Positions 351 to 12,497 of a stretch of DNA of 64,000 nt are shown here, piece by piece. Position 1 is the stretch's first letter, and the number at the start of each line of letters is the position of its first letter. Origin of the DNA: Guillardia theta CCMP2712 (lineage: Eukaryota > Protista > Cryptophyta); assembly GCF_000315625.1 (NCBI RefSeq), contig NW_005434568.1, positions 144,582-208,581 on the forward strand, in the 5' to 3' direction. The position numbers and the translations under genes are program-made. The notes below the pieces were generated by a model, which was not told the origin of the DNA, searched no databases, and was given only the letters and a program-made list of their open reading frames with translations.

Positions 351-1094
351 GACTTTCTAAAACCAAGTATGGGAATCTCGTTCTTGGACGGTGACTCAAA
401 CAAACAACTCGGGCATGGTATAAGACAAAAAGTAATCGAGAGTCATGTAGATGTTTACATTCTTTACACCAAGGATATCTTCAGACAACTGCAAGCCAAT
501 GTCTTGAGTGGAGTCGTTCAACTTAGCAATACCGTTGAACTTCACTGGCAATTGGAATTTAAACAATGGTGGCTGCAGCTGAGAGGAAAACCAAAGACTC
601 GTTGTCTTGCTGCAGCAGAAGAAGCTCCTTTGAGATTGAATGTGGAGATACAGGATACGTGCAATGCTGTTTTGTTTCTATCTGAGATCGTGCAAACTGA
701 TTGGGCCCAATAAAGGTAGTAGCCATTTCTAAGAACCTCTGTTGTGCAAATGTAATTGAACATACCCTTTCATGATTCACAACTGCGTTTCGCGGCCACG
801 AGGGACTGGTAGTATGGGCCATTGACAATCAGCTTGTGAAGACAGAAACTGCCGCTAACGAGGTTGGATGGCTGATTTTCAGATTTGCCAAGATCTAGCG
901 TTATGGCTAGACTGGAAAAAATATCTGGACCCAAATAGTTCCTATTAAGCCGGCTTACCAAGGCCATTTCAGCTTACAAGCTCATCCGCGCCAAAGATAG
1001 CAAATAAAACTTTTAGGTTAAATTTATGTATTCAAAATCATTTGTAATTCTCTTGCTTTGCCGCGGTTCCACATTGAGGGCCAACTCACCATGC

Positions 1095-2211
1095 TCAGCA
1101 AGTTTCTGGGGACGACTTCATCAACGGCTCATGTTTTCTTTCCTCTCTTCGACGTTTTCCTGAAACAAAAATGGAAATGGTGACTTCAGTTGCCTTCTTA
1201 GGATTGCCAGTTGATAATGTCATTGTTGCACAGTCATAGTCTCCATTGATCGTGACAACAAGCCGTTGTGTTTCCTGTGAAGGTTGAAGATATCAATCCA
1301 CTCTTCGACAAGTTGAAGAAGGCCGAGACCATGAGTCCCACCATCCACTCTTACCTGTGATATTTTTGGCAAATGAACAAAGCAGCCAGCCATGCTATCG
1401 TTTGCACGACAGAATCCTTGGTACTGCGATTTCGTTATACCGTTTGCTGTGAGGGCAACTGCTGCTTCCCGTGGGGTAGCCATCATTTGTCTGACCACAG
1501 GTTTCAGGCAGTTTTGAAGCTCCTTATTCGTGGCAAGTTCATTTTTTAAGAAGAACGTAAGGCTATCGTATTTCGAAGTTTTGCACTTCGGAAGTTCTGC
1601 TTTCGCGGCCCCTCGACCGCTTCCTCTCCCCCGGCAGAGTCTTCCTCATTCTAGCGGTGTAATAGATCAGCAAAATGTCCCCATTTCACTCGAAAATTGG
1701 CCTTGTGTGATGCAAATTGCCGATCTACCTTCTTCGTGACCACATCTAGAAGGTCCGAGGCTCATCAGTGTCACCCTGGATCTTCGTCAGAATCGCTGTT
1801 TTCACTTTTGGATCTTTGATAGCATCGTAACAAGCCGGGTTTGGTTCATCGGAGTCAGGGGAAATAATCGCTTCGCGCATGGCTTCATCCACATGATCAC
1901 TAAAACCTCCATGCTCCTCAGACTCTAGTAAGATTCGAAGCAACAACTCAGGAGATCTACCTGCATCCCAGGTGTTACAAAGATTTGAATTTTACAAATG
2001 ATCTCTTTTCAAACCTATGGCCTTCTCCTTGTTTATAGAGGAAGCCCTCTCGTCTTGCCAGAAACTCCCAGGTGAGTTGATTGAATTCATCATCATCCAG
2101 CCTGGCAGGGTGATGGTTTGCGACGTCTGCACGAACTTCCTTGCAAAAGGTGGGGATGACGGATTTGATAGATTTGGTCCTGACATGATTAATCAATGTT
2201 TCAATGTTCAA
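1095..2211 (-). CDS. Multi-exon hypothetical protein, probably transposon cargo or decayed
   Basis: Minus-strand ORFs 1975-2211, 1746-1946 and 1220-1498 can be joined through GT-AG introns into a protein-like sequence; no recognisable motif; start unclear. Confidence 0.4.
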
Positions 2212-2799
2212 AGTATATTGGTAAATTTCAAGATCCCAGTGACATGTCTCTCAACTAGAGCCGTGGCAACTGGCCTCTGGGAAACATTTAAATCCCTGAA
2301 ATAGGGATGGGTGGGGTGGGATCAGGGGAACAGGGGGGACTACCCTACCCCCTATTTGTCAAAGCACTAGCAGAGAAGGACCCGGTGGCTTCATTCTTGT
2401 ACCAAACAAAGAAACACAGTACACCATGAATTTGAATCAGGTACAAAATACCTTCGAACATTTGTATTGAATTTCTAAGTCTTTTCTACTGTGTTTCCAA
2501 TTTATATTTGTTTTATGATTATCCGTATCCTTCTAAAACGTTTTCGCAGCCTTAAAACATGTCGTCTGTTAAAAGTTTCGAGGGGAGTGGGGTGGTCTTG
2601 AAGGTTACCGCCCATGACAATTCAAATACCCCACCCCCTATTACTAGATGATAATGGGGGTAAAAGGGTGCTTCTGTGCGAGGGCAAGTACCCGTATATG
2701 AGCAGTCAAAAGTACCGGTCATTAAAAGCGCTAATCAGTAAACCTGGAATTTCATATACCGGTGCAGCCCCCTGAATCCCAATATGCGGATTTCGTCAT

Positions 2800-3291
2800 A
2801 TGGAGGATATGTTAGAGGTCCTGATGAGACAGGTGAATGGGAGGGCAGACTGTCAAAGCAGTCCAAGACAGCCTGCACAAGTTGAGCAGAGTGGAGCATT
2901 GCAGGTGAACGGATACAACTGGGGTCGACGCATTCGCCTTCTGCCAGAAGATTTTTTATGGCCAAAGATGTTCGTTGATGTGGCTTACGAGTGGTGGATG
3001 CAAGGAAATGCAGAAAAAGGGTATCCACCATTCAAAAACCTGGAACCGAGTGATTTTGCCGACCAGAATGCAAGGAAACGTTTGAGTGACTTCAGGTATC
3101 TGATGGGCAAAATAGACCAATGTGCACAGGAGAAAGGAGTGTATAAGGAGAACGCAACCATGGAGGAAACCAAGGAAATCTTCAAGCAGTGCGTGGAATG
3201 CTTGAAACTACCGAGGAAAGAAGGGAGGCAACGACGGACCTGGCAGTCTGTAGCGACCTGGTGCAGAGAACAAGACGGATTGCATCGTTGA
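2800..3291 (+). CDS. GCR1_C-like domain resembling the C-terminus of CryptonS tyrosine-recombinase transposon proteins; no recombinase domain present
   Basis: YNWGRRIRLLPEDFLWP..AYEWWMQGN...YPPFKNLEPSDF....RKRLSDFRYLM fits the W-x-G / P-x-x-L / RKRLS pattern of this domain as I recall it. Confidence 0.65.
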   Translation: MEDMLEVLMRQVNGRADCQSSPRQPAQVEQSGALQVNGYNWGRRIRLLPEDFLWPKMFVDVAYEWWMQGNAEKGYPPFKNLEPSDFADQNARKRLSDFRYLMGKIDQCAQEKGVYKENATMEETKEIFKQCVECLKLPRKEGRQRRTWQSVATWCREQDGLHR

Positions 3292-3840
3292 GAACCGGTA
3301 GTTAGACGAATGCGATGATTACAGTGACAGATTTTATAGCAAAACATATGACGTACGCAAGTGCCGATATTCCACAGAAAAAGTGAGTGGTAATGGACGT
3401 GTAGGAATGAAGAACGAAGGTGATGGTGGACTAAGGAGTTAAGGTTGTCGCTTTCCTTGCGATGTGGCAATATATTGATGAGGTTTGAATCGTGAGATTG
3501 TAGTTCAAGATCATTGTGTACATCATACATCCATTGTCATATGGCTAGCTATGATGTAAAGAGGAAAAGAATGCTCTCATCTACTCAGAATCGCTCACAG
3601 CACCGTCTTTCTTCCTCTTCTGAAGCCATTGCGCAAATTTTATGGGAAATTTACTGTGAACTATAAACTTTCATAAATTCATGCCGTTCACTTTTAGCCC
3701 TTTCGTTAATTTCCACTCTTCTTTTCGAGAAGCTTTTTTTTTGGGGTGGCGTGTGAATTCAAACAAGTTTTCAACGGCAGCAAGAGATACCTCCAAAGAG
3801 TACCAGTGCAGTTTAGTTATCATTTCTGCTAGGCCTTTAC

Positions 3841-6800
3841 ATGTATCCTGAGTTACAGATGGACACATTCCTCAAAGGATCGGTGACGTCACAGGAGGAA
3901 TTGGATGAACTTCTGCTTCCGATTCAGAATGCAATGAATCGATATCGGACAGGATTGGGCATGTGTTTGTTCCCGCTGATACGAGAGTTTCCACTCGATC
4001 AACTCGGTAATTTTGGTGGTGAGTTTCATACTGTATGGGAAAAGAACAAGAGTGTGAATGTGGATGGCGAGTTGACGGAGGAATGGAAAAGGCAGGTCGT
4101 TTTGCTTTTCCTGAATGCCAAATTTTGTTGGAGGAAGAGCGGGCAGATTCGAGATTATGTGGAGCAGTTGCAAAATTTGTCCAAGACGGTGTCGGATCAG
4201 TATGGTAGTCCTGTTGATGAAGGGGATTCCGGCAATCCAGTGAGTGCTTCTGGCAAGAAGAAAAAGAAGGGGGTAAGCCGAAGGGATTCTGATGGCAAGG
4301 AGATGGATGCCGCGATGATTAACGCGTTATATGAAGACGTTGAATATTTTCTCCTGGAGCTTGGCCAATACTTTCGATCCTATCTGAAGCCATTATTTCC
4401 TGTTCCATGGGCTATGTCAGGAGGATTCAAGTCCAAGTTGGCTCCGATCAAAGCTCTGGCGTATATGATATGGGAAGTCAGAAAGCGCAGTGGGAATCTC
4501 AATGCCACTCCGGATAAAACGCGGATGGAGCTTCTGACGCTGGCAAAGTCGAAATTGCCTGACATATCTACCTTCCACAGCGTTATGGTCCAGATGAAGA
4601 TCCTGCTTAACAAGTTGGAAGATGTAGCGGGAGAGGAATCAGTGAAAGCCTTGGAAATGATTTTGGTGGAGGAGCTGATCAAGCAATGTTATGTTTCAGA
4701 TTGTATTGATATTCGAGATGTCGCGCGCTTGAATAAGCGGTCCAAGTTGTCAACCGAATTGACTTGGGAGGAGGTGTACTCTTGGGCTGTGAATTTGCAT
4801 GATGAACAGGTATTTTTTACTGCTGGGGGTGAGAAAACACAGTCGGGCACTGCGTCAGTTAATGTGGCAGCCTCGGAGGTGCAAGCTACGGTTAGTCAAC
4901 CGAATGCAGACAAGGCGTCTGAAAGTGGAGGACAGGGTGGTAAGGAAAAGGGAGACTCGAGAGGCAGCAATGAGTCGCCGCCTGTGGATAATGCATCTGG
5001 CAGTCAGGAGGATGGAAGCACGTTGGACGCGAGGGAGAGTACGCGAGGCCGAGGTGAGCATCCGGGTCAGGGAATGCGGCGCAGGGGCGCCTACCATGTT
5101 GATGGGTCTCGTGGCGGCTACGGTCGTGGAGGCTCCGCTGGTGCTGGATCGAATGATTTTCGAAATCACCAAGGAAGAGTCGGTGGTTTTCAAGGGAATA
5201 ATTTTCGGGGAAGAGGCTCAGGATTTCGAGGTCATCATCAGCAGCGGGGGAAGCCGTATGATCGTCCGGCTGGTAGAGGGATGCGCGGACGAGGTAGAGG
5301 GGAGCATTGGACGACGCATAACTACAATCCACGCAGAGGCGAGTCTGATGGTTTCTCAAGAGGTGATCGTTCGGGAGGACATCATGAGCGGCGAAACAAT
5401 GTGCATGAATTTTCTCCTCAGGCTCTCGGCGAGGCTGTACTGCGGTTGGCCAGGGAAATCCAGGGGGGAAGGAGGTCAGGTGCAGACGGTGAGCAGCCGG
5501 TTGGACCATGGCAGGAGACGTTTGAGCCTAACCATCGGGGACGTGGCCGTAGTCCGGTGTCGGACAATCCTTTTGAGAGGACGGTACAGCAAAATGTTTC
5601 AGAAAGCAATGCTCAGGCAGGTCGCCGTCAGGCGGAATGGCGATCCTTCTTTGCGTTTCAGTTTGGCATTGATTCAACGATGTCGATGACTGATATTCAA
5701 GGAATGGCAATGCAGAGTATGGTGGGAGACGGTGACGGAAGGGTTGTCAATTTTTTGCTTGATTCGGGTGCAAATGTTACCATGGTTGGGGACGAATCCC
5801 TCCTCTCAGACGTACAATCGGGAGACGATTTCTTTGTCATGACGGCAGGAGGAAAGATTAATTGTACCAAGTATGGCAAGCTAAATTTGCAAATTGTCGG
5901 TGCAGATGGTGAGTCGGACAATATAGTATTGGAGAATGTTCGAGTTTGTCCTGTCCTTCCTGTACCACTTGTGAGTCTGGATGATTTTCTGGGATCCAAG
6001 TATTACATTGTTGGACGGGGGTCGAAGAACACGGTCAAATCCTATGTGGCTTCGGAGGATGGCAAGATCAGGATTCCTCTGATTCAGCGGGACAAGTTGT
6101 ATCTGTTGACAACCAGAGGTCCGATGCATGATTCTGTGGCAGGTGATGTGCCAATCTTTTGTGTTTCAGCGGAGGCTGGAACAGTTTGTTTGACTAAAGC
6201 ACATGTCACTCCTGGACCTTCTTTCGATGGGAAGTCAACACAGAGTCTATCTGATGCGGTTCTGTGGCACATGAAAACGGGGCACCCTGATTGTCGAGTA
6301 CAGAAGTTGCTTGCGGATACGGTCAAATACATTACATTCAATAGGCGGTTGATTCATTCTCCGTGTCACGTGTGTAGGATTTCGAAATTTGTGTCAAGCC
6401 CTGTTCACAAACAAACCTCATTTCGACAGGAACGTGTTGGAGATGTAAATGCTCTGTGGTATGTAGACTTGAAAGATATGATTGCAGTCTCTGAACCATC
6501 GGGTTATCGTTACTTTCTTATAGTTGTCGACGCTTTTTCCGGATACCTGATTGTGCGTCCCATGACGTCCAAGGGTCAAACGAGTGATATTCTGATGGAG
6601 TTACTTCGACAGGAGGAGAAAAGTGTCAAGAGAAACGGAGTTCAACGCATCATATCTGATAACGGCAGTGAGTTTTCTTCTTCAGAGTTGGAGGCATTCG
6701 TTCGTGAGACGGGTTTGAAGTGGGATCGGATTCCTGATTACAGTCAAGTTTACAATTCGCTGGCTGAGAGAGGAATTCGAGCAGTCAGTACTATCCACAG

Positions 6801-7512
6801 AACTTTGCTCAAACAGAGTGCTTTGCCTATCGAGAAATGGGAATTTTCTGTTATGCAGGCTACGTACCTGTACAATGCTCTCCCGAGTTTCAGGAATTTC
6901 GGCAATCTTTCTCCGTATACAATCTATAATGGAGATGTTTTCGACTTCAAATCTCTCAAGACCTTTGGGTGTATGACATTCTTCAAGAATAATGTACGCA
7001 GTTCGAAGATTGAAGATCCAGCTAAACAGGGCATTATGCTCGGAAATGCAAACGCTTTTCCTGGGCATACGATTGGCTACTTGGTATGGTGTGTTGACGA
7101 CAACAAAATCTGTCACACGAATAATCTGACCTGTGATGAATTCTTCTTTCCATTTCGACGTGCGGGACGGATGAATTGGCAAGAGGATCCTGAAGTGGTG
7201 GTAAAGCACGATATTGACATGGAGGATGATTCGCCTGTCAAGGGTGTTGAAGATGAACGGTCAGAGGCAGTGAATGCTCGGACTAGTGGTCGTCGAAAGA
7301 GAACACGGTTGGAGGATCATTCACTGGAGTCGGATGATGAGGGAGTAAGGGCTGCTGAGATGGTGTGCCAGGACAGCGATGAAGATTATGTGCCTACAGT
7401 GATGGTTGACGGTGGCCGAGAGGATGCGGATCATACGGATACAGAGGCAGCGTCGTCGACCAAAACATGTCGTACCAGACGAGACTTTCGTACATTCCAT
7501 GGTATTTTCTAA
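3841..7512 (+). CDS. Copia Gag, aspartic protease and integrase; ORF terminates inside the inserted element
   Basis: Protease FLLDSGANVTM; HHCC LWHMKTGH...CHVC; integrase WYVDL...IISDNGSEF...LAERGIR; FGC...KIEDPAKQGIMLG...GYLVW. Confidence 0.95.
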   Translation: MYPELQMDTFLKGSVTSQEELDELLLPIQNAMNRYRTGLGMCLFPLIREFPLDQLGNFGGEFHTVWEKNKSVNVDGELTEEWKRQVVLLFLNAKFCWRKSGQIRDYVEQLQNLSKTVSDQYGSPVDEGDSGNPVSASGKKKKKGVSRRDSDGKEMDAAMINALYEDVEYFLLELGQYFRSYLKPLFPVPWAMSGGFKSKLAPIKALAYMIWEVRKRSGNLNATPDKTRMELLTLAKSKLPDISTFHSVMVQMKILLNKLEDVAGEESVKALEMILVEELIKQCYVSDCIDIRDVARLNKRSKLSTELTWEEVYSWAVNLHDEQVFFTAGGEKTQSGTASVNVAASEVQATVSQPNADKASESGGQGGKEKGDSRGSNESPPVDNASGSQEDGSTLDARESTRGRGEHPGQGMRRRGAYHVDGSRGGYGRGGSAGAGSNDFRNHQGRVGGFQGNNFRGRGSGFRGHHQQRGKPYDRPAGRGMRGRGRGEHWTTHNYNPRRGESDGFSRGDRSGGHHERRNNVHEFSPQALGEAVLRLAREIQGGRRSGADGEQPVGPWQETFEPNHRGRGRSPVSDNPFERTVQQNVSESNAQAGRRQAEWRSFFAFQFGIDSTMSMTDIQGMAMQSMVGDGDGRVVNFLLDSGANVTMVGDESLLSDVQSGDDFFVMTAGGKINCTKYGKLNLQIVGADGESDNIVLENVRVCPVLPVPLVSLDDFLGSKYYIVGRGSKNTVKSYVASEDGKIRIPLIQRDKLYLLTTRGPMHDSVAGDVPIFCVSAEAGTVCLTKAHVTPGPSFDGKSTQSLSDAVLWHMKTGHPDCRVQKLLADTVKYITFNRRLIHSPCHVCRISKFVSSPVHKQTSFRQERVGDVNALWYVDLKDMIAVSEPSGYRYFLIVVDAFSGYLIVRPMTSKGQTSDILMELLRQEEKSVKRNGVQRIISDNGSEFSSSELEAFVRETGLKWDRIPDYSQVYNSLAERGIRAVSTIHRTLLKQSALPIEKWEFSVMQATYLYNALPSFRNFGNLSPYTIYNGDVFDFKSLKTFGCMTFFKNNVRSSKIEDPAKQGIMLGNANAFPGHTIGYLVWCVDDNKICHTNNLTCDEFFFPFRRAGRMNWQEDPEVVVKHDIDMEDDSPVKGVEDERSEAVNARTSGRRKRTRLEDHSLESDDEGVRAAEMVCQDSDEDYVPTVMVDGGREDADHTDTEAASSTKTCRTRRDFRTFHGIF

Positions 7513-10110
7513 TGCCCAATTATAAATTTATATCCTTTTAACAAACACTTGTACCTGTTAATTTGATCATAAGCATACAGTTTTTAGTCAATTTTGTACC
7601 AGAATGATTTGTACCACTCAGTACTCTTTTATATTCGTTTTAAGCATTTGAGTTCCGGCTTACACGCCTCTTGGCTGCTCTCTGCCCTGTGTACCGGTAT
7701 GTTTGTCTAATATGGAGGGGGTAGGGTTATTCGTATATTTCGATACACGCTCATGAAATCTTATTAGTGTCAGCCATTGACGAGTGTAGTAAATCTAGCC
7801 AATAAGTATTTTTGTTTTCAAATCAAGGAGTCGTATGCCAGCTAGCAACGGCAATCTTTTTTTTCTACACCGGTTGTTTTATATGGATACCTACCCTATG
7901 TCTATAGGGTGCCACCGAAACACAGGTCCCCTTGCCCCCGATCAAAGAGCAATTAGTTTTCATTAAAAATCCTGAGATCTCCATTGCAAGTATCCCTCCC
8001 CTCCTCCTTCCATGCTCTTCTCCCTCCCTCCCTCCCCCCCTGCTCGCCTCCCTTCCTCCCTGCTCCCTCCCTCCCCCCTGCTCCCCTCCCTCCCCGTTGC
8101 TTCCCTTTCCCTTGCGCTCCAGTTATAGACACCAAACAAATGAATCTTCACCGTCGTGTATCAGCAACAAATGGAATTCAGAGAAGGCGAAGGCAGGAAG
8201 ATTTCGATACATTCTTGGAGCAGGAAGAGACTTGTGATGAGTCAAAGACACCTGAAGATTTGAAGCTCGAATGATCCTGCATACGTCAGTTGATGATCGA
8301 GACTTGCCCAGGATGTACTGGAAAAAGCCAGGCAGTAATTTGAATATCATACTTGAGCCTGGCACAGGGGTTCAATATCAGTGTGAAGATCACAGGGGCG
8401 TTGAAGTGAATCGACTGGGCATGATCAAATCGCTGCACTCAGATGCACAGGTTGTCGAAGTGTACATCATGTACAATCGAGTCCTCTTGGAACATGTAGA
8501 CGAAACCATTATAACTAATCGAGTGCCCTGTGTGGCCCTGAAAAGAATTTTGAACAAAGGTGGAAACCGTGATTGTTATCAATCAATTTACAAGGATACG
8601 GATGAAATAAATGCTATACCAAAAATGTTTTTCTTCAGCTTTCCTTGCATGTTGGAGCATGCCAACGATGATCTCCACGATAATTTCAGAGTGCATGGGT
8701 ATATATTTTTTCATGAAGACGACATCGAAAATAATAAATACTGTGAAATCTCTCACTTCTCGATTGCAAACCCGGCACCACTCGTTGAAAAGATGGCGCA
8801 AACAACTTTCTGTTCAGTGGCGGAGTACAATCGGATTTGTCGAGATATGACCGAGGTCAAAAAGATGTTCAATCAGTGGTTGAAGTCAAAGAGTGAGACC
8901 TTTGAGAAGAATTTTTGTTTGTTGTTTTCCATTGATTTTCGTTGCTTTCGATTGCTTTACAATTTTTGTTTGTTGTTTTCCATCGCTTTACGTGTGACAT
9001 GCTCGTCACAAGCCATGTTTATGAACTCCGAAAACCTCAGCATCTTTTCGCTGCCTGTTTCACAACCTCGGAATCATCGCCGTCTTTGTCCAAACCTACA
9101 TCCGCAAGATGCTCCTATTCGCTTGGGCACCCGCTTGTCTCCATGCTTCTCTTCCCCACAACTGATAAAAACATTACATTCGCAGGAATGATATTCAATG
9201 GAGACTCTACCTTATGTCTTAGCTCGCTGGTTCTGATACTGAGAAGTCCTGAGGGAAGTTCATTCACATCCGGCATTCATGGCGTTGAATAGTTCATCGA
9301 TCTTACACCTGCGATCTATTTGCAATCAAGTTGCCTACACGACTGACATGCCTTATGCTTATGTGCTTGGTTGACACAGAGAGGAGGAAGTATGGGTCTT
9401 GTAGAATGCCAACCAAAACAACAATAAATTGCCTAATCAGAGAGATCCTTTACGAGAAACAATCTTGACACCAAACAACTCTACAGTCAGAGATGTGCTC
9501 GAAGCTCAATCATACGAAAGAGGGTTGTGGATGCTTGATCACCAAAAACGAGCAATTCTCCATCTTACAATGAGCATCAAAAGGATTCGAAAACAGCCCT
9601 AGGCCCTGGAATCCATGGCGATGCTGATTCCTACAGCTTCCTTTGAAAAACAAGCTCGAGCTGTTTGAAATGTCGTCTTGCAGTATGCCGCAAAAAGTAC
9701 AAACATTCACACATGATCCAACCTTGGATGGCCTGGAGCTTGAATACGATGAAAGAGCCATTGGCTGAGAGCCATCTTGGATTCAAACAAACGCCGCCTG
9801 CGCCGGCGGGTGGGGATGCAGCAATGGGGGAAGGGTAGGGCAGGCGATTTGGTTGTATATGCACCCCCCAGGCGTGTAAAAGCGTGTAAGGTCAAAAATA
9901 GTTTTAATGTTTGAAACCTTGTTGTTTGGAGGAAGCAAGAATACTTGTAAACCTAAAACTGCTCGACACGGTCCCCGATTCAAACATACTTTCAACCATT
10001 ATCGAAGTTTCTGGTACAAATTTTCGGTGCGCCGACCATTCAAAAATCCTGGGCTGAGGTACCCCGCTCGAAAATGATCAAAAGCGAGCATTAGAAAATA
10101 CCATGGAATG
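7493..10110. mobile_element. 2.6-kb element with inverted ends nested in the Copia pol; superfamily unresolved
   Basis: CATTCCATGGTATTTTCTAATGC (7493-7515) is the exact reverse complement of 10088-10110; subterminal inverted pair TTTGTACCAGAA (7593-7604 and 10009-10020); removing it restores the Copia frame. Confidence 0.9.
8139..9603 (+). pseudogene. Decayed or frameshifted unknown gene inside the nested element (main ORF 8271-9191)
   Basis: 306-aa ORF flanked by out-of-frame coding-like segments; internal duplication of AATTTTTGTTTGTTGTTTTCCAT at about 8910 and 8961; no DDE or tyrosine-recombinase motif recognised. Confidence 0.5.
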
Positions 10111-10734
10111 AAGCAGAGACGGGATGCCGAAAACCGCTTCATCAACAGGCGGGCTGAAGTTGTAATGGATGATGGGAAGGTTCGAACGGGGACGATTACT
10201 CAAGTTGTCTTCAAAGATGATACATTCTTGGTGCGTGTTACGTTTGACGACAAGTACTGGATATTAATCCATCCGGACAGTGAGAACGTACGGATTTTGT
10301 CTATGGGGAAGGAAGTTACCATGATTGCTATGTCGGAGGCAGAGACATCTGAGTTGTTGCCTGGGGATGAGCTACAATCAGGAGTTTTGCCGAAGAATGT
10401 CTTCGAGTTGACTGGGTGTAACGATTATTACTTTCGAGCGTTTCCTCAAAAGGGGGATAACATCCTTTCGCAGCTGGTGGAAAAGACAGTTCGAGGAAAT
10501 CCCGATGTCTTTCTTATGCACAGGAAGTCTCCTCTGTCATCTCAGCTGGTACCTGGAAAGGTGCTCAACGGCGATGGAAAAGAGGTACTGTTCGTATTGG
10601 ACGAGGGTAATCGTTCGACTACTTCTCAGCACTCTGCACGATGGATACCATTGAGACGGGAACGGTGGAATGATGTGGTTCCACTCATGGAGCCAGGGGA
10701 TGACATTGTATTGATCTTGGTACAAGTGAGTTGA
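10108..10734 (+). CDS. Continuation of Copia pol between integrase and RT, with two Tudor-like segments
   Basis: Same frame as 3841-7512 once the insert is removed; FINRRAEVVMDDGKVRTGTITQVVFKDDTFLVRVTFDDKYWILIHPDSENVRIL. Confidence 0.75.
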   Translation: MKQRRDAENRFINRRAEVVMDDGKVRTGTITQVVFKDDTFLVRVTFDDKYWILIHPDSENVRILSMGKEVTMIAMSEAETSELLPGDELQSGVLPKNVFELTGCNDYYFRAFPQKGDNILSQLVEKTVRGNPDVFLMHRKSPLSSQLVPGKVLNGDGKEVLFVLDEGNRSTTSQHSARWIPLRRERWNDVVPLMEPGDDIVLILVQVS

Positions 10735-12497
10735 CACAATGTTTTCCAGACTCTCGTATGCTTGTCACCAACATGGCGCTAGTTGTTCCTGTATGGGAAG
10801 CTGTCAAACTCTCTGCAGCATTTCTGTCGCGAGCTCCGCCATCAGTACAAGACTCGAGTTCGACGGCAGATCCACGCAATCGAAGGGAGATGTTGTTGCA
10901 CAAGGATAGAGAATTGTGGGAGGCAGCTGAACGAGCTGAGATTCAGAAGATGGAAGAAAGGCGAGTTTGGGAAGTGGTCCCGAGGTCTGATGAAACACGA
11001 GGCAACATACTTGCGAGAGCGATGTGGGTTTATTCCTCAAAGAAAGATTTACATGGCAACATTCTGAAGAGAAAAGCAAGGTTGGTTGTGATGGGCAATC
11101 TTTTACCCACGTCCGAGGAGTTGTTTGCGCCGACGACGTCGATGGATAACATTCGGTTGTTACTCAGCATAGCGGCAGGAAATGGATGGATTATCGCCTA
11201 CCGAGATATCGCGGCAGCGTTCCTATACAGTGAATTGAACGAACCGATGTTCATGATACCGCCTGACATCATGGCTTTGCCTCCGAATGTTTTGCTCAAA
11301 GTAACCAAAGCGATATATGGGACGCGAACGGCTCCGCGACGATGGTGGGAAAAGCTGTCTCGAGAATTCCTGCGTCTGGGCGCGGAACCTGTTGGCCATG
11401 ATGAAATCATTTACAGATATGAACACAACGGCTCAAGAATTCTCATCACGACATGGGTGGATGATCTTCTTCTGGTATGTGAGAATCAAGAAGTCTGTAA
11501 TTATTTTTTGGACTGCTTGAGCAAGGTATTCGACTTTTCTGGAAGTGAAGCTACAGGTACATTCCTGGGTATTCGTGTTCACCAAGATTTGACGAAAGGA
11601 ACTATTACCTTGAGTCAGAAGCATTTTATTGAACAGCTGGTTGAGAAATTTGGAATAGCTCTTCGTTCAGTGTTTACTATCTTGCCTGGAGTGTACATGC
11701 GGAGTTATCATCTAGAGGGAGAATTGTTGGATAAGTTCTCGGTGAGACAATATCAGGCTCTTCTTGGAACAATCTTGTACGTTGCTAATGGGACAAGAGC
11801 TGACATTTCCTTCGCGGTCAGTCTCTTAAGCAGATTTGCACGGGCACCCAGAGTGCGTGACTGGGATGCATTGGTTCACTTGGCGAGGTATCTGTACACG
11901 ACGAGAGATATTTGTATTGTTTACCATCAGAGAGGTGTATCTGTTAATCAGGAGGTGTTTCACAATGAACTCGTAGCTGCGAGTGATAGTGACTGGGGGA
12001 CGGATGTCTTGACGCGACGAAGTCAGTCCGGATGGGCTATCGTAATGAACGGAGGAGTTATTTCATATGGTTCGAAAGCGCAGAAAGTCATATCACTTTC
12101 ATCGTCAGAGGCAGAAATCTATGCGACATCGGTAGTCGCCAAGCATATCAAGATGTATCGAAGCTTACTTCAACAGTTAGGGTTTTGTCAGCAACGTCCG
12201 ACGAGGCTCCTGCTGGATAATGAGCCGTGTATTCGTTTGTTGACCGAGAAACGAGCATATTCTAGACTGAAGCACATCGACTTACGTGCTAAGTTTGCTG
12301 TTCTCATGGTGGATGAGGGAGAATTACTTCCTGTGAAAGTTCCTACTAAGTTTCAGCCTGCGGACCTGTTCACGAAAATTCTGCCGTTTACGAGGTGGAA
12401 AGCAATTGGTTCGTTTCTATTTGGAGAAGATTTCAACGCTCAAGGGGTATGCTGCAGTGATGACTCTCATCCTAATGAGAACGATGGCATTCTGTGA
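10731..12497 (+). CDS. Copia reverse transcriptase and RNase H (frame -1 relative to the upstream ORF)
   Basis: KARLVVMG, FAPT, DIAAAFLY, KAIYG...APRRW, WVDDLL; RNase H SDSDWG, SSSEAE, DN, KHID, ADLFTK. Confidence 0.97.
   Translation: MTQCFPDSRMLVTNMALVVPVWEAVKLSAAFLSRAPPSVQDSSSTADPRNRREMLLHKDRELWEAAERAEIQKMEERRVWEVVPRSDETRGNILARAMWVYSSKKDLHGNILKRKARLVVMGNLLPTSEELFAPTTSMDNIRLLLSIAAGNGWIIAYRDIAAAFLYSELNEPMFMIPPDIMALPPNVLLKVTKAIYGTRTAPRRWWEKLSREFLRLGAEPVGHDEIIYRYEHNGSRILITTWVDDLLLVCENQEVCNYFLDCLSKVFDFSGSEATGTFLGIRVHQDLTKGTITLSQKHFIEQLVEKFGIALRSVFTILPGVYMRSYHLEGELLDKFSVRQYQALLGTILYVANGTRADISFAVSLLSRFARAPRVRDWDALVHLARYLYTTRDICIVYHQRGVSVNQEVFHNELVAASDSDWGTDVLTRRSQSGWAIVMNGGVISYGSKAQKVISLSSSEAEIYATSVVAKHIKMYRSLLQQLGFCQQRPTRLLLDNEPCIRLLTEKRAYSRLKHIDLRAKFAVLMVDEGELLPVKVPTKFQPADLFTKILPFTRWKAIGSFLFGEDFNAQGVCCSDDSHPNENDGIL

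Follow-up and report, generated by a model that had tools for sequence, protein, structure and literature searches.

A 2.6-kb insert in a Guillardia theta Copia element as a probable deletion derivative of a two-gene transposon family with a predicted RAG1/Transib-fold enzyme

Introduction

What kind of mobile element interrupts a Ty1/copia retrotransposon of the cryptophyte Guillardia theta at positions 7493..10110 of the DNA analysed here, and by what chemistry did it enter? The stretch in question, which we call the window, comprises 64,000 nucleotides of contig NW_005434568.1. The ends of the insert can be parsed in three ways, and a first inspection of the window alone (the original prediction) left the element unclassified between them. 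In reading A the insert has 23-bp terminal inverted repeats and a 1-bp 'A' target duplication; in reading B it has 15-bp GG..CC terminal inverted repeats and an AT duplication, as in ISL2EU/PHIS elements; and in reading C it is bounded by a CCATGG direct repeat of the kind used by tyrosine recombinases, similar to CryptonS.

We show below that comparison with other copies of the element and with empty target sites removes the second and third of these readings and keeps the first only for this one site. We conclude, with a probability that we put at about 80%, that the insert is a non-autonomous, internally deleted copy belonging to a ~5-kb two-gene family of DNA transposons of the cut-and-paste type in G. 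theta, and that members of this family join their targets in a near-flush manner. The label 'unclassified' is thereby superseded: the element can be placed as a copy derived by internal deletion from a two-gene family, the enzyme of which has a predicted RAG1/Transib fold.

The ends belong to the element and the empty site excludes two readings

The insert is bounded, as originally described, by a perfect inverted repeat with CCATGG in each arm (7493-7515 on the forward strand and 10088-10110 on the reverse, 23 nt, 100% complementary). Searching the whole assembly (87.1 Mb in 669 contigs) with the element gave matches at 51 places, and at 14 of these the match is full-length with 98-100% identity. 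The full copies, at least 14 in number and 97.6-99.8% identical, have exactly the same boundaries and the same 2.6-kb structure in unrelated flanks, and the inverted ends are therefore not a chance pairing. All 44 end occurrences in the fetched loci, representing 39 distinct flanks, start with CATTCCATGG, apart from one TATTCC variant, and none is shortened. The left end is also that of the 5-kb partner described below. The constancy of CATT/CATTCC, on which the choice between the readings had been made to depend, thus holds at both ends of every copy, and only the DNA outside varies. Since these bases are constant whatever the flank, they are part of the element and not of the target, and readings B and C fall.

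The host retrotransposon leads to the same conclusion. This Copia has six further copies that carry no insert; their flanking sequence is 87-100% identical, and they read ...GACTTTCGTAAGCAGAGACGG... at this point. The empty site is accordingly CGTAAGCAG, which had been named beforehand as the outcome that excludes readings B and C. The site changes from ...TTTCGTAAGCAG... when empty to ...TTTCGTA[element]AAGCAG... when filled, a net gain of one A, so that the single A of the empty site flanks the insert on both sides (7492 and 10111). Removal of the 2618 bp of the element together with one A restores GAC TTT CGT AAG CAG AGA CGG (D F R K Q R R), as found in the six uninterrupted copies, and the frame arithmetic behind reading A is therefore correct.

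Reading B would make the insert a member of the ISL2EU/PHIS type, its 15-bp ends being GG...CC and its palindromic target CATTCCATGGAATG showing an AT duplication. The single copy in the window can be parsed in this way, but CATTCCAT stands before GG at both ends of every copy independently of the flank, and so belongs to the element; it does not occur in the empty Copia site, which reads CGTAAGCAG and lacks CATTCCATGGAATG. In addition, the partner enzyme has the predicted fold of RAG1/Transib and not that of PIF/IS5-type transposases. Reading C, in which a Crypton-like tyrosine-recombinase element integrates from a circle through a CCATGG core common to element and target, draws on a CCATGG direct repeat with inner inverted arms that is indeed present. 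However, the empty Copia site has no CCATGG core, the outer CATT/AATG is constant in all copies, and the 5-kb partner carries a DDE enzyme instead of a recombinase gene. We regard the chance that either of these two readings is right as negligible. On the predicted RAG1/Transib fold of the family's enzyme, the element is classed as a DDE cut-and-paste transposon, and neither as an ISL2EU/PHIS element nor as a tyrosine-recombinase Crypton.

Junctions across the family show no fixed target duplication

Reading A accounts for the Copia site but does not extend to the family as a general rule. The longest runs of bases shared between the two flanks of an insertion, over 16 flank pairs, are 1,3,0,1,0,0,1,0,1,0,0,2,0,0,0,0 bp; six of the 16 pairs share any base at all, which is roughly the level expected by chance. 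A second clean empty site is provided by the 5-kb copy on contig C307, which sits in a 332-bp satellite. The unfilled monomers in the fetched loci (11 of 11) read CGAGACAAG-A-CTTTTTT (AAG-A-CTT), and the filled site reads CGAGACAAG[element]CTTTTTT, one A having been lost relative to the unfilled monomers. The two clean empty sites thus show +1 and -1, the junction is 0 plus or minus 1 base with no fixed duplication, and we infer a near-zero stagger between the joined strands.

Could this pattern be what is left of an ordinary Transib/Chapaev insertion, whose 4-5 bp duplication was later erased by recombination between copies or by mutation? Two loci, L013 and L014, share one flank and not the other, which speaks for some flank exchange or co-duplication. 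Against such erasure, the two sites known to have been empty are independent and show +1 and -1, not 4-5 bp; a 4-5 bp repeat is present in 0 of the 16 flank pairs; and copies that are 98-100% identical are too young for their flanks to have decayed. We consider an erased duplication very improbable.

The junctions also bear on the main rival account, in which the family and its excision enzyme are the same but the blunt, excised linear element is ligated into chance chromosome breaks by host end joining, an event that would leave no duplication and alter one or a few target bases. RAG biology is known to include blunt signal ends and precise signal joints, which would suit this account, and the +1/-1 target changes, with occasional sharing of 2-3 bp, resemble end-joining junctions. 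Some trimming of the ends would then be expected, but every one of the 44 end occurrences keeps its complete terminus, the TATTCC variant being a point change. Moreover, the target changes are minimal, and at least 14 near-identical copies imply efficient and repeated integration. We therefore judge host end joining to be unlikely, and favour joining by the transposon's own enzyme.

Some insertion sites are palindromic. The copy at L003 lies at the centre of a 12-bp palindrome and that on C307 at AAG-A-CTT, and palindromic arms of at least 3 bp are found at 5/16 sites compared with 14% in mismatched flank pairs. Because this enrichment is weak over 16 sites, we treat a preference for palindromic targets as a lead. 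RAG transposase prefers hairpin and distorted targets, and a similar preference would fit the two palindromic sites, weak as the statistics are.

Several further features of the flanks were observed. At least three insertions of the family lie in the GC-rich 332-bp tandem satellite (L005, L022, L024, L043 and L047; G000:C307 and C251), and a distance of 10 bp within the monomer separates two of these. The left end at L005 and the right end at L024 overlap by 10 bp in this satellite; we read them as two insertions, on different contigs, and not as the ends of one that made a 10-bp duplication. Just outside the left end, L013 (G000:C28) and L014 (G000:C2) have an identical 98-bp AT-rich stretch, beyond which their surroundings are unrelated, as they are on the right side. 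The unit of 98 bp plus element seems to have been moved or copied whole, and this could be a case of an alternative outer end being used or of flanking DNA being transduced. Finally, the insertions at L011, L015, L017 and L018 adjoin related short sequences such as ACTCAGTGAC or GTCACTGAG, which could belong to the terminus of a different repeat family or may reflect a weak target preference.

A 5-kb two-gene element is the candidate autonomous partner

For an autonomous partner with the same ends, which the original prediction had suggested looking for, there is a candidate of 5,028 bp at G000:C307:42088-47115, whose sequence contains no assembly-gap Ns. Its ends, CATTCCATGGCATTTACTAATGCCC, are 25 bp long and agree fully with the left end that most copies of the 2.6-kb element have. 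Between them lie two intact, convergent open reading frames (ORFs), ORF2 of 876-881 amino acids and ORF1 of 378-415 amino acids; in the coordinates of locus L047, where the element runs from an end at 189 to one at 5216, ORF2 occupies 590-3217 on the forward strand and ORF1 3401-4534 on the reverse strand. Over its first 1419 bp the window element shows 86% identity to this partner, and the ORF2 relative at C307:43632-45032 directly adjoins sequence that matches the window element at 78-86%.

The window copy, 2618 bp on the forward strand with ORF1 lying towards its left end, retains both inverted ends of 23-25 bp, the subterminal TGTACC motifs, two thirds of a frameshifted ORF1 and a stub of ORF2. 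ORF1 residues 1-43 (8140..8268, forward strand, 86% to partner ORF1 by tblastn) are cut off by a frameshift from residues 45-257 (8271..8909, forward strand, 83% identity by tblastn), after which the 378-residue protein is truncated and its C-terminus departs from the family alignment. The deletion junction follows at 8910..8993 on the forward strand, where a 33-nt stretch is duplicated and similarity to the partner breaks between element positions 1419 and 1450. From 8942 to 9271 the DNA is again 78% identical to the partner, and this stretch includes the last ~50 codons of ORF2 (residues 821-874; 9116..9270, reverse strand, 62-72% identity by tblastn). This remnant is all that is left of an enzyme gene, in agreement with the earlier finding that no transposase is recognisable in the window copy. 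As only ORF1 residues 1-43 and 45-257 and ORF2 residues 821-874 are kept relative to the partner, the window element is an internal-deletion derivative, and the common 2.6-kb structure of 14 copies means that this derivative was itself amplified. The near-identity of these copies in different flanks suggests that the family has been active. The longest ORF is 306 amino acids in the window copy and 402-411 in most other copies. Positions 7989-8105, upstream of the start codon of ORF1, form a low-complexity tract rich in C and T (CCCT/CTCC units); in other copies the open frame crosses it to give a proline/serine-rich extension, which is probably not coding.

The pairing of the two genes is not peculiar to this copy. 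All lineages detected in this genome have their relatives of ORF1 and ORF2 as direct neighbours, L040, L041, L044 and L046 included. The ORF1 relatives elsewhere in the genome are 20-34% identical. The end motif CATAGCGTTG lies 38 bp upstream of an ORF1 relative (L041:3104 and L042:3111; G000:C31 and C72), with a convergent ORF2 of 972 amino acids downstream in L041. Judged by sequence, the CATAGCGTTG-ended family has putative two-gene members of the same kind.

A binding site may also be common to the window element and a sister family. Four TGTACC motifs, candidate protein-binding sites, lie within ~150 bp of the left arm of the window element (7550..7695, forward strand), compared with 25 in the whole window. 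They include AATTTTGTACCAGAA at 7590-7604, which forms with 10009-10023 the second inverted pair already reported ~90-100 bp inside the ends (15 nt, 93%). Towards the right end the motif is present just once, inverted, in the arm at 10009..10023 on the reverse strand (position 10013). The same TGTACC asymmetry between the ends is seen in the 5-kb partner. Two further copies of the window subterminal motif TTTTGTACCAGAA stand upstream of the ORF1 gene of a sister family (L046:12-26 and 76-90; G000:C9) in which ORF1 is only ~20% identical, and this recurrence in front of so distant a gene suggests a candidate conserved binding site. The motif lies 97 bp from the left end and 87 bp from the right, a difference of about one helical turn, and the ends are asymmetric in motif number, with four TGTACC copies at one and one at the other. 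This asymmetry recalls, by analogy, that of RAG-like elements.

ORF2 is a predicted RAG1/Transib-fold enzyme

The sequence of ORF2 on its own is little informative. Word-indexed protein searches gave no match for ORF2, Pfam gave none for any ORF of the element or for ORF1 and ORF2 of several lineages, and RAG1-related Pfam models did not match ORF2. A profile of five Guillardia ORF2 sequences, searched against 1.84 billion proteins, found 104, of which the best are G. theta hypothetical proteins and the distant ones are metagenomic proteins of 900-1770 amino acids with neither names nor Pfam domains. Some of these distant relatives (P0104 and three other members of alignment A4) have a LysM-like stretch, which in the one checked is just under the Pfam cut-off. 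Against PDB sequences the Guillardia-only profile returned coiled-coil noise only. A wider profile of 38 sequences returned one real match, the Helicoverpa Transib transposase (HzTransib, 6PQN; E 0.0027), spanning the His pair and the catalytic Glu.

The predicted structure is considerably more telling. AlphaFold2 modelled the 617-residue ORF2 core with a predicted local distance difference test score (pLDDT) of 88.4 and a predicted template modelling score (pTM) of 0.84, and the top 49 Foldseek matches to this model are all RAG1, amphioxus RAGL (BbRAGL) or HzTransib. Alignment to RAG1 and HzTransib with VIA-align gives Z ~18 over 409-430 residues at ~4 Å, compared with 11.8 for the P element, 7.8 for ISCth4 and 6.7 for Hermes.

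Seven residues are invariant in an alignment of five Guillardia lineages (C307 numbering): D398, D531, E836, C550, C553, H805 and H811. In the model D398 ends strand 1, D531 follows directly after strand 4 and E836 is on a helix, which is the arrangement expected for an RNase H-like DDE site. The Cys pair, C550-x2-C553, lies 19 and 22 residues past the second Asp, a spacing that we take to equal that of RAG1 D708/C727/C730. The His pair precedes the Glu and is H805-x5-H811 in the Guillardia lineages; in the wider profile, where aligned to HzTransib, it is H-x4-H.

The only transposase family in Pfam that is touched at all is DUF1280, with sub-threshold matches in 5 of the 38 aligned sequences. 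None of the Guillardia ORF2 proteins matches it, and the highest score, from a remote relative, is 19.9 bits where the curated cut-off is 25. DUF1280 is also the top neighbour of ORF2 by protein language model, ahead of RAG1 clusters, and this family has been identified as the Chapaev transposases, which cluster with RAG1 (PMC3985635). Taken together, the model and these matches place ORF2 in the RAG1/Transib/Chapaev neighbourhood; the predicted fold does not imply membership of Transib itself.

ORF1 is a predicted BAH protein

ORF1 is scarcely more visible to sequence comparison, with one fragment found in word-indexed protein searches and one extra relative found with an ORF1 profile. The ORF1 model (pLDDT 74, pTM 0.69) shows a BAH fold together with helices and a small beta region. 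Residues ~50-208 match BAH domains only, namely those of Orc1, Sir3, PBRM1, the plant histone readers EBS/SHL and DNMT1 (Foldseek E down to 8e-6, Z 8-10.8), and the language-model neighbours of ORF1, which we take as a lead only, are BAH proteins too. The predicted BAH region, roughly 8286-8762 on the forward strand of the window, is retained whole in the window copy. The convergent pairing of the two genes had led us to consider a RAG2-like Kelch propeller for ORF1, which the BAH model rules out.

Genomic context of the window copy

The interrupted host is a Ty1/copia polyprotein on the forward strand. Its integrase part lies upstream of the insertion (3841..7492; Pfam rve, SH3_retrovirus and gag_pre-integrs) and its reverse transcriptase part downstream (10111..12497; Pfam RVT_2, E 1.7e-36). 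At least five other copies of this Copia (window 3841-12497; L032-L037) are 99-100% identical around the insertion site, and one further copy is 87% identical. With at least five copies this close in sequence, the host Copia is itself a young family.

Proposed mechanism and significance

The copy structure, the shared ends, the two empty sites and the predicted folds suggest how the family might move. ORF2 would cut at the CA termini and transfer the 3' ends to two target strands almost directly opposite each other, leaving the target unduplicated or with one base gained or lost. The short element would be moved in trans by ORF2 supplied from autonomous copies such as that at G000:C307:42088-47115, and ORF1 may tether or direct the enzyme by way of chromatin. 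More broadly, and with somewhat less than an even chance of being right, the family may represent a deep, undescribed branch of the RAG1/Transib/Chapaev group that joins its targets almost without stagger (0 plus or minus 1 bp), may favour distorted or palindromic DNA, and depends on a BAH partner; the 2.6-kb family would then be a trans-mobilised derivative that still carries the reader domain.

Several points weigh against our interpretation. The partner is only 86% related in the ends and left arm, and ~600 bp of the window element (roughly 9272-9870) have no counterpart in the C307 copy, so that the true parent may be another copy. When the short family is compared with the partner, ORF1 has a dN/dS (nonsynonymous to synonymous substitution) ratio of 0.55, indicating weak constraint only. 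The folds of both ORF2 and ORF1 are predictions and, because RAG1 and Transib are the only members of their clade with solved structures, the fold match cannot separate Transib from its Chapaev/CACTA relatives. Clean comparison of filled and empty sites is possible at two insertions only: L002, L003, L012 and L006 gave no empty sites, their flanking sequence at the insertion point being unique in the genome; the satellite site of L005 has an assembly gap 39 nt beyond the right end; and L007 yields no simple pair of filled and empty sites.

What is gained is that the element is classified, two of the three proposed chemistries are excluded and a candidate autonomous partner is located. New here are the link between the CATTCCATGG short family and a two-gene family with a predicted RAG1-fold enzyme and a predicted BAH protein, the presence of the same gene pair, as judged by sequence comparison, next to one end of the CATAGCGTTG family, and two empty sites that put the junction at 0 plus or minus 1. 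The short family also supplies numerous young insertions at which the rule for the junction can be measured. Antibody-gene recombination has its source in RAG1-type enzymes. If flush integration holds true, the target-strand geometry of such enzymes would be more plastic than has been assumed. Likewise, a fixed chromatin reader other than RAG2 would be a second, independent case of a RAG1-fold enzyme gaining a histone-reading helper, in parallel to RAG1/RAG2.

Comparison with known systems

A full-text literature search found no published work in which Transib is linked to Guillardia, to a BAH partner or to insertion free of duplication. The closest known structures are those of Transib and RAG1 (HzTransib 6PQN/6PQX; RAG1 core 4WWX and 6DBO), with which ORF2 shares the predicted fold of the whole catalytic core, the DDE triad, a Cys pair that follows the second Asp and a His pair that precedes the Glu, and whose ends likewise start with CA. 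Sequence similarity is in contrast marginal, amounting to the single PDB profile match. The ends also differ, being CATTCCA here (and CATAGCGTTG in a sister family) rather than a CACAGTG-like heptamer, so that only the first two bases, CA, are in common. Furthermore, no 5-bp duplication is made here, and a second gene is always present.

In having such a second gene, the family resembles the RAGL and ProtoRAG elements, including the RAGL of the alga Aureococcus, which also carry a RAG1-fold gene and a further gene inside inverted ends (PMC9435367); with ProtoRAG it shares the convergent, tail-to-tail gene order. The partner proteins are nevertheless different, a predicted BAH fold here and the RAG2 Kelch propeller there. 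Transib and RAGL elements, that of Aureococcus included, make 5-bp duplications and have CAC-type ends, which in RAGL are bipartite and heptamer/nonamer-like (PMC9435367); the elements described here make no such duplication.

Absence of a target duplication is a feature of Spy, of the PHIS superfamily, which we take to be a described eukaryotic DDE group with a PIF/Harbinger-type enzyme and a strict AAA|TTT target. Flush insertion is common to Spy and to the present family, but neither the predicted enzyme fold nor the targets found here fit that group.

The broader relatives are the CMCT clade (CACTA/EnSpm-Mirage-Chapaev-Transib), which Kojima defines by C(2)C and H(n)H motifs together with CA...TG termini (PMC12730594). 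Both motifs are present in ORF2, on the stretch from the second Asp to the Glu, and the elements have 5'-CA...TG-3' termini (CATTCC...GGAATG). Differences from this clade are that H-x5-H is one residue longer than the published range and that, for Chapaev, DUF1280 scores under the Pfam cut-off; a BAH partner is not described for CMCT or Chapaev members in the literature consulted. Most strikingly, CMCT elements make target-site duplications of 2-5 bp (PMC12730594), whereas the junction here is 0 plus or minus 1. The family would thus depart from all described CMCT members in joining its two ends to opposite target strands almost directly across from one another.

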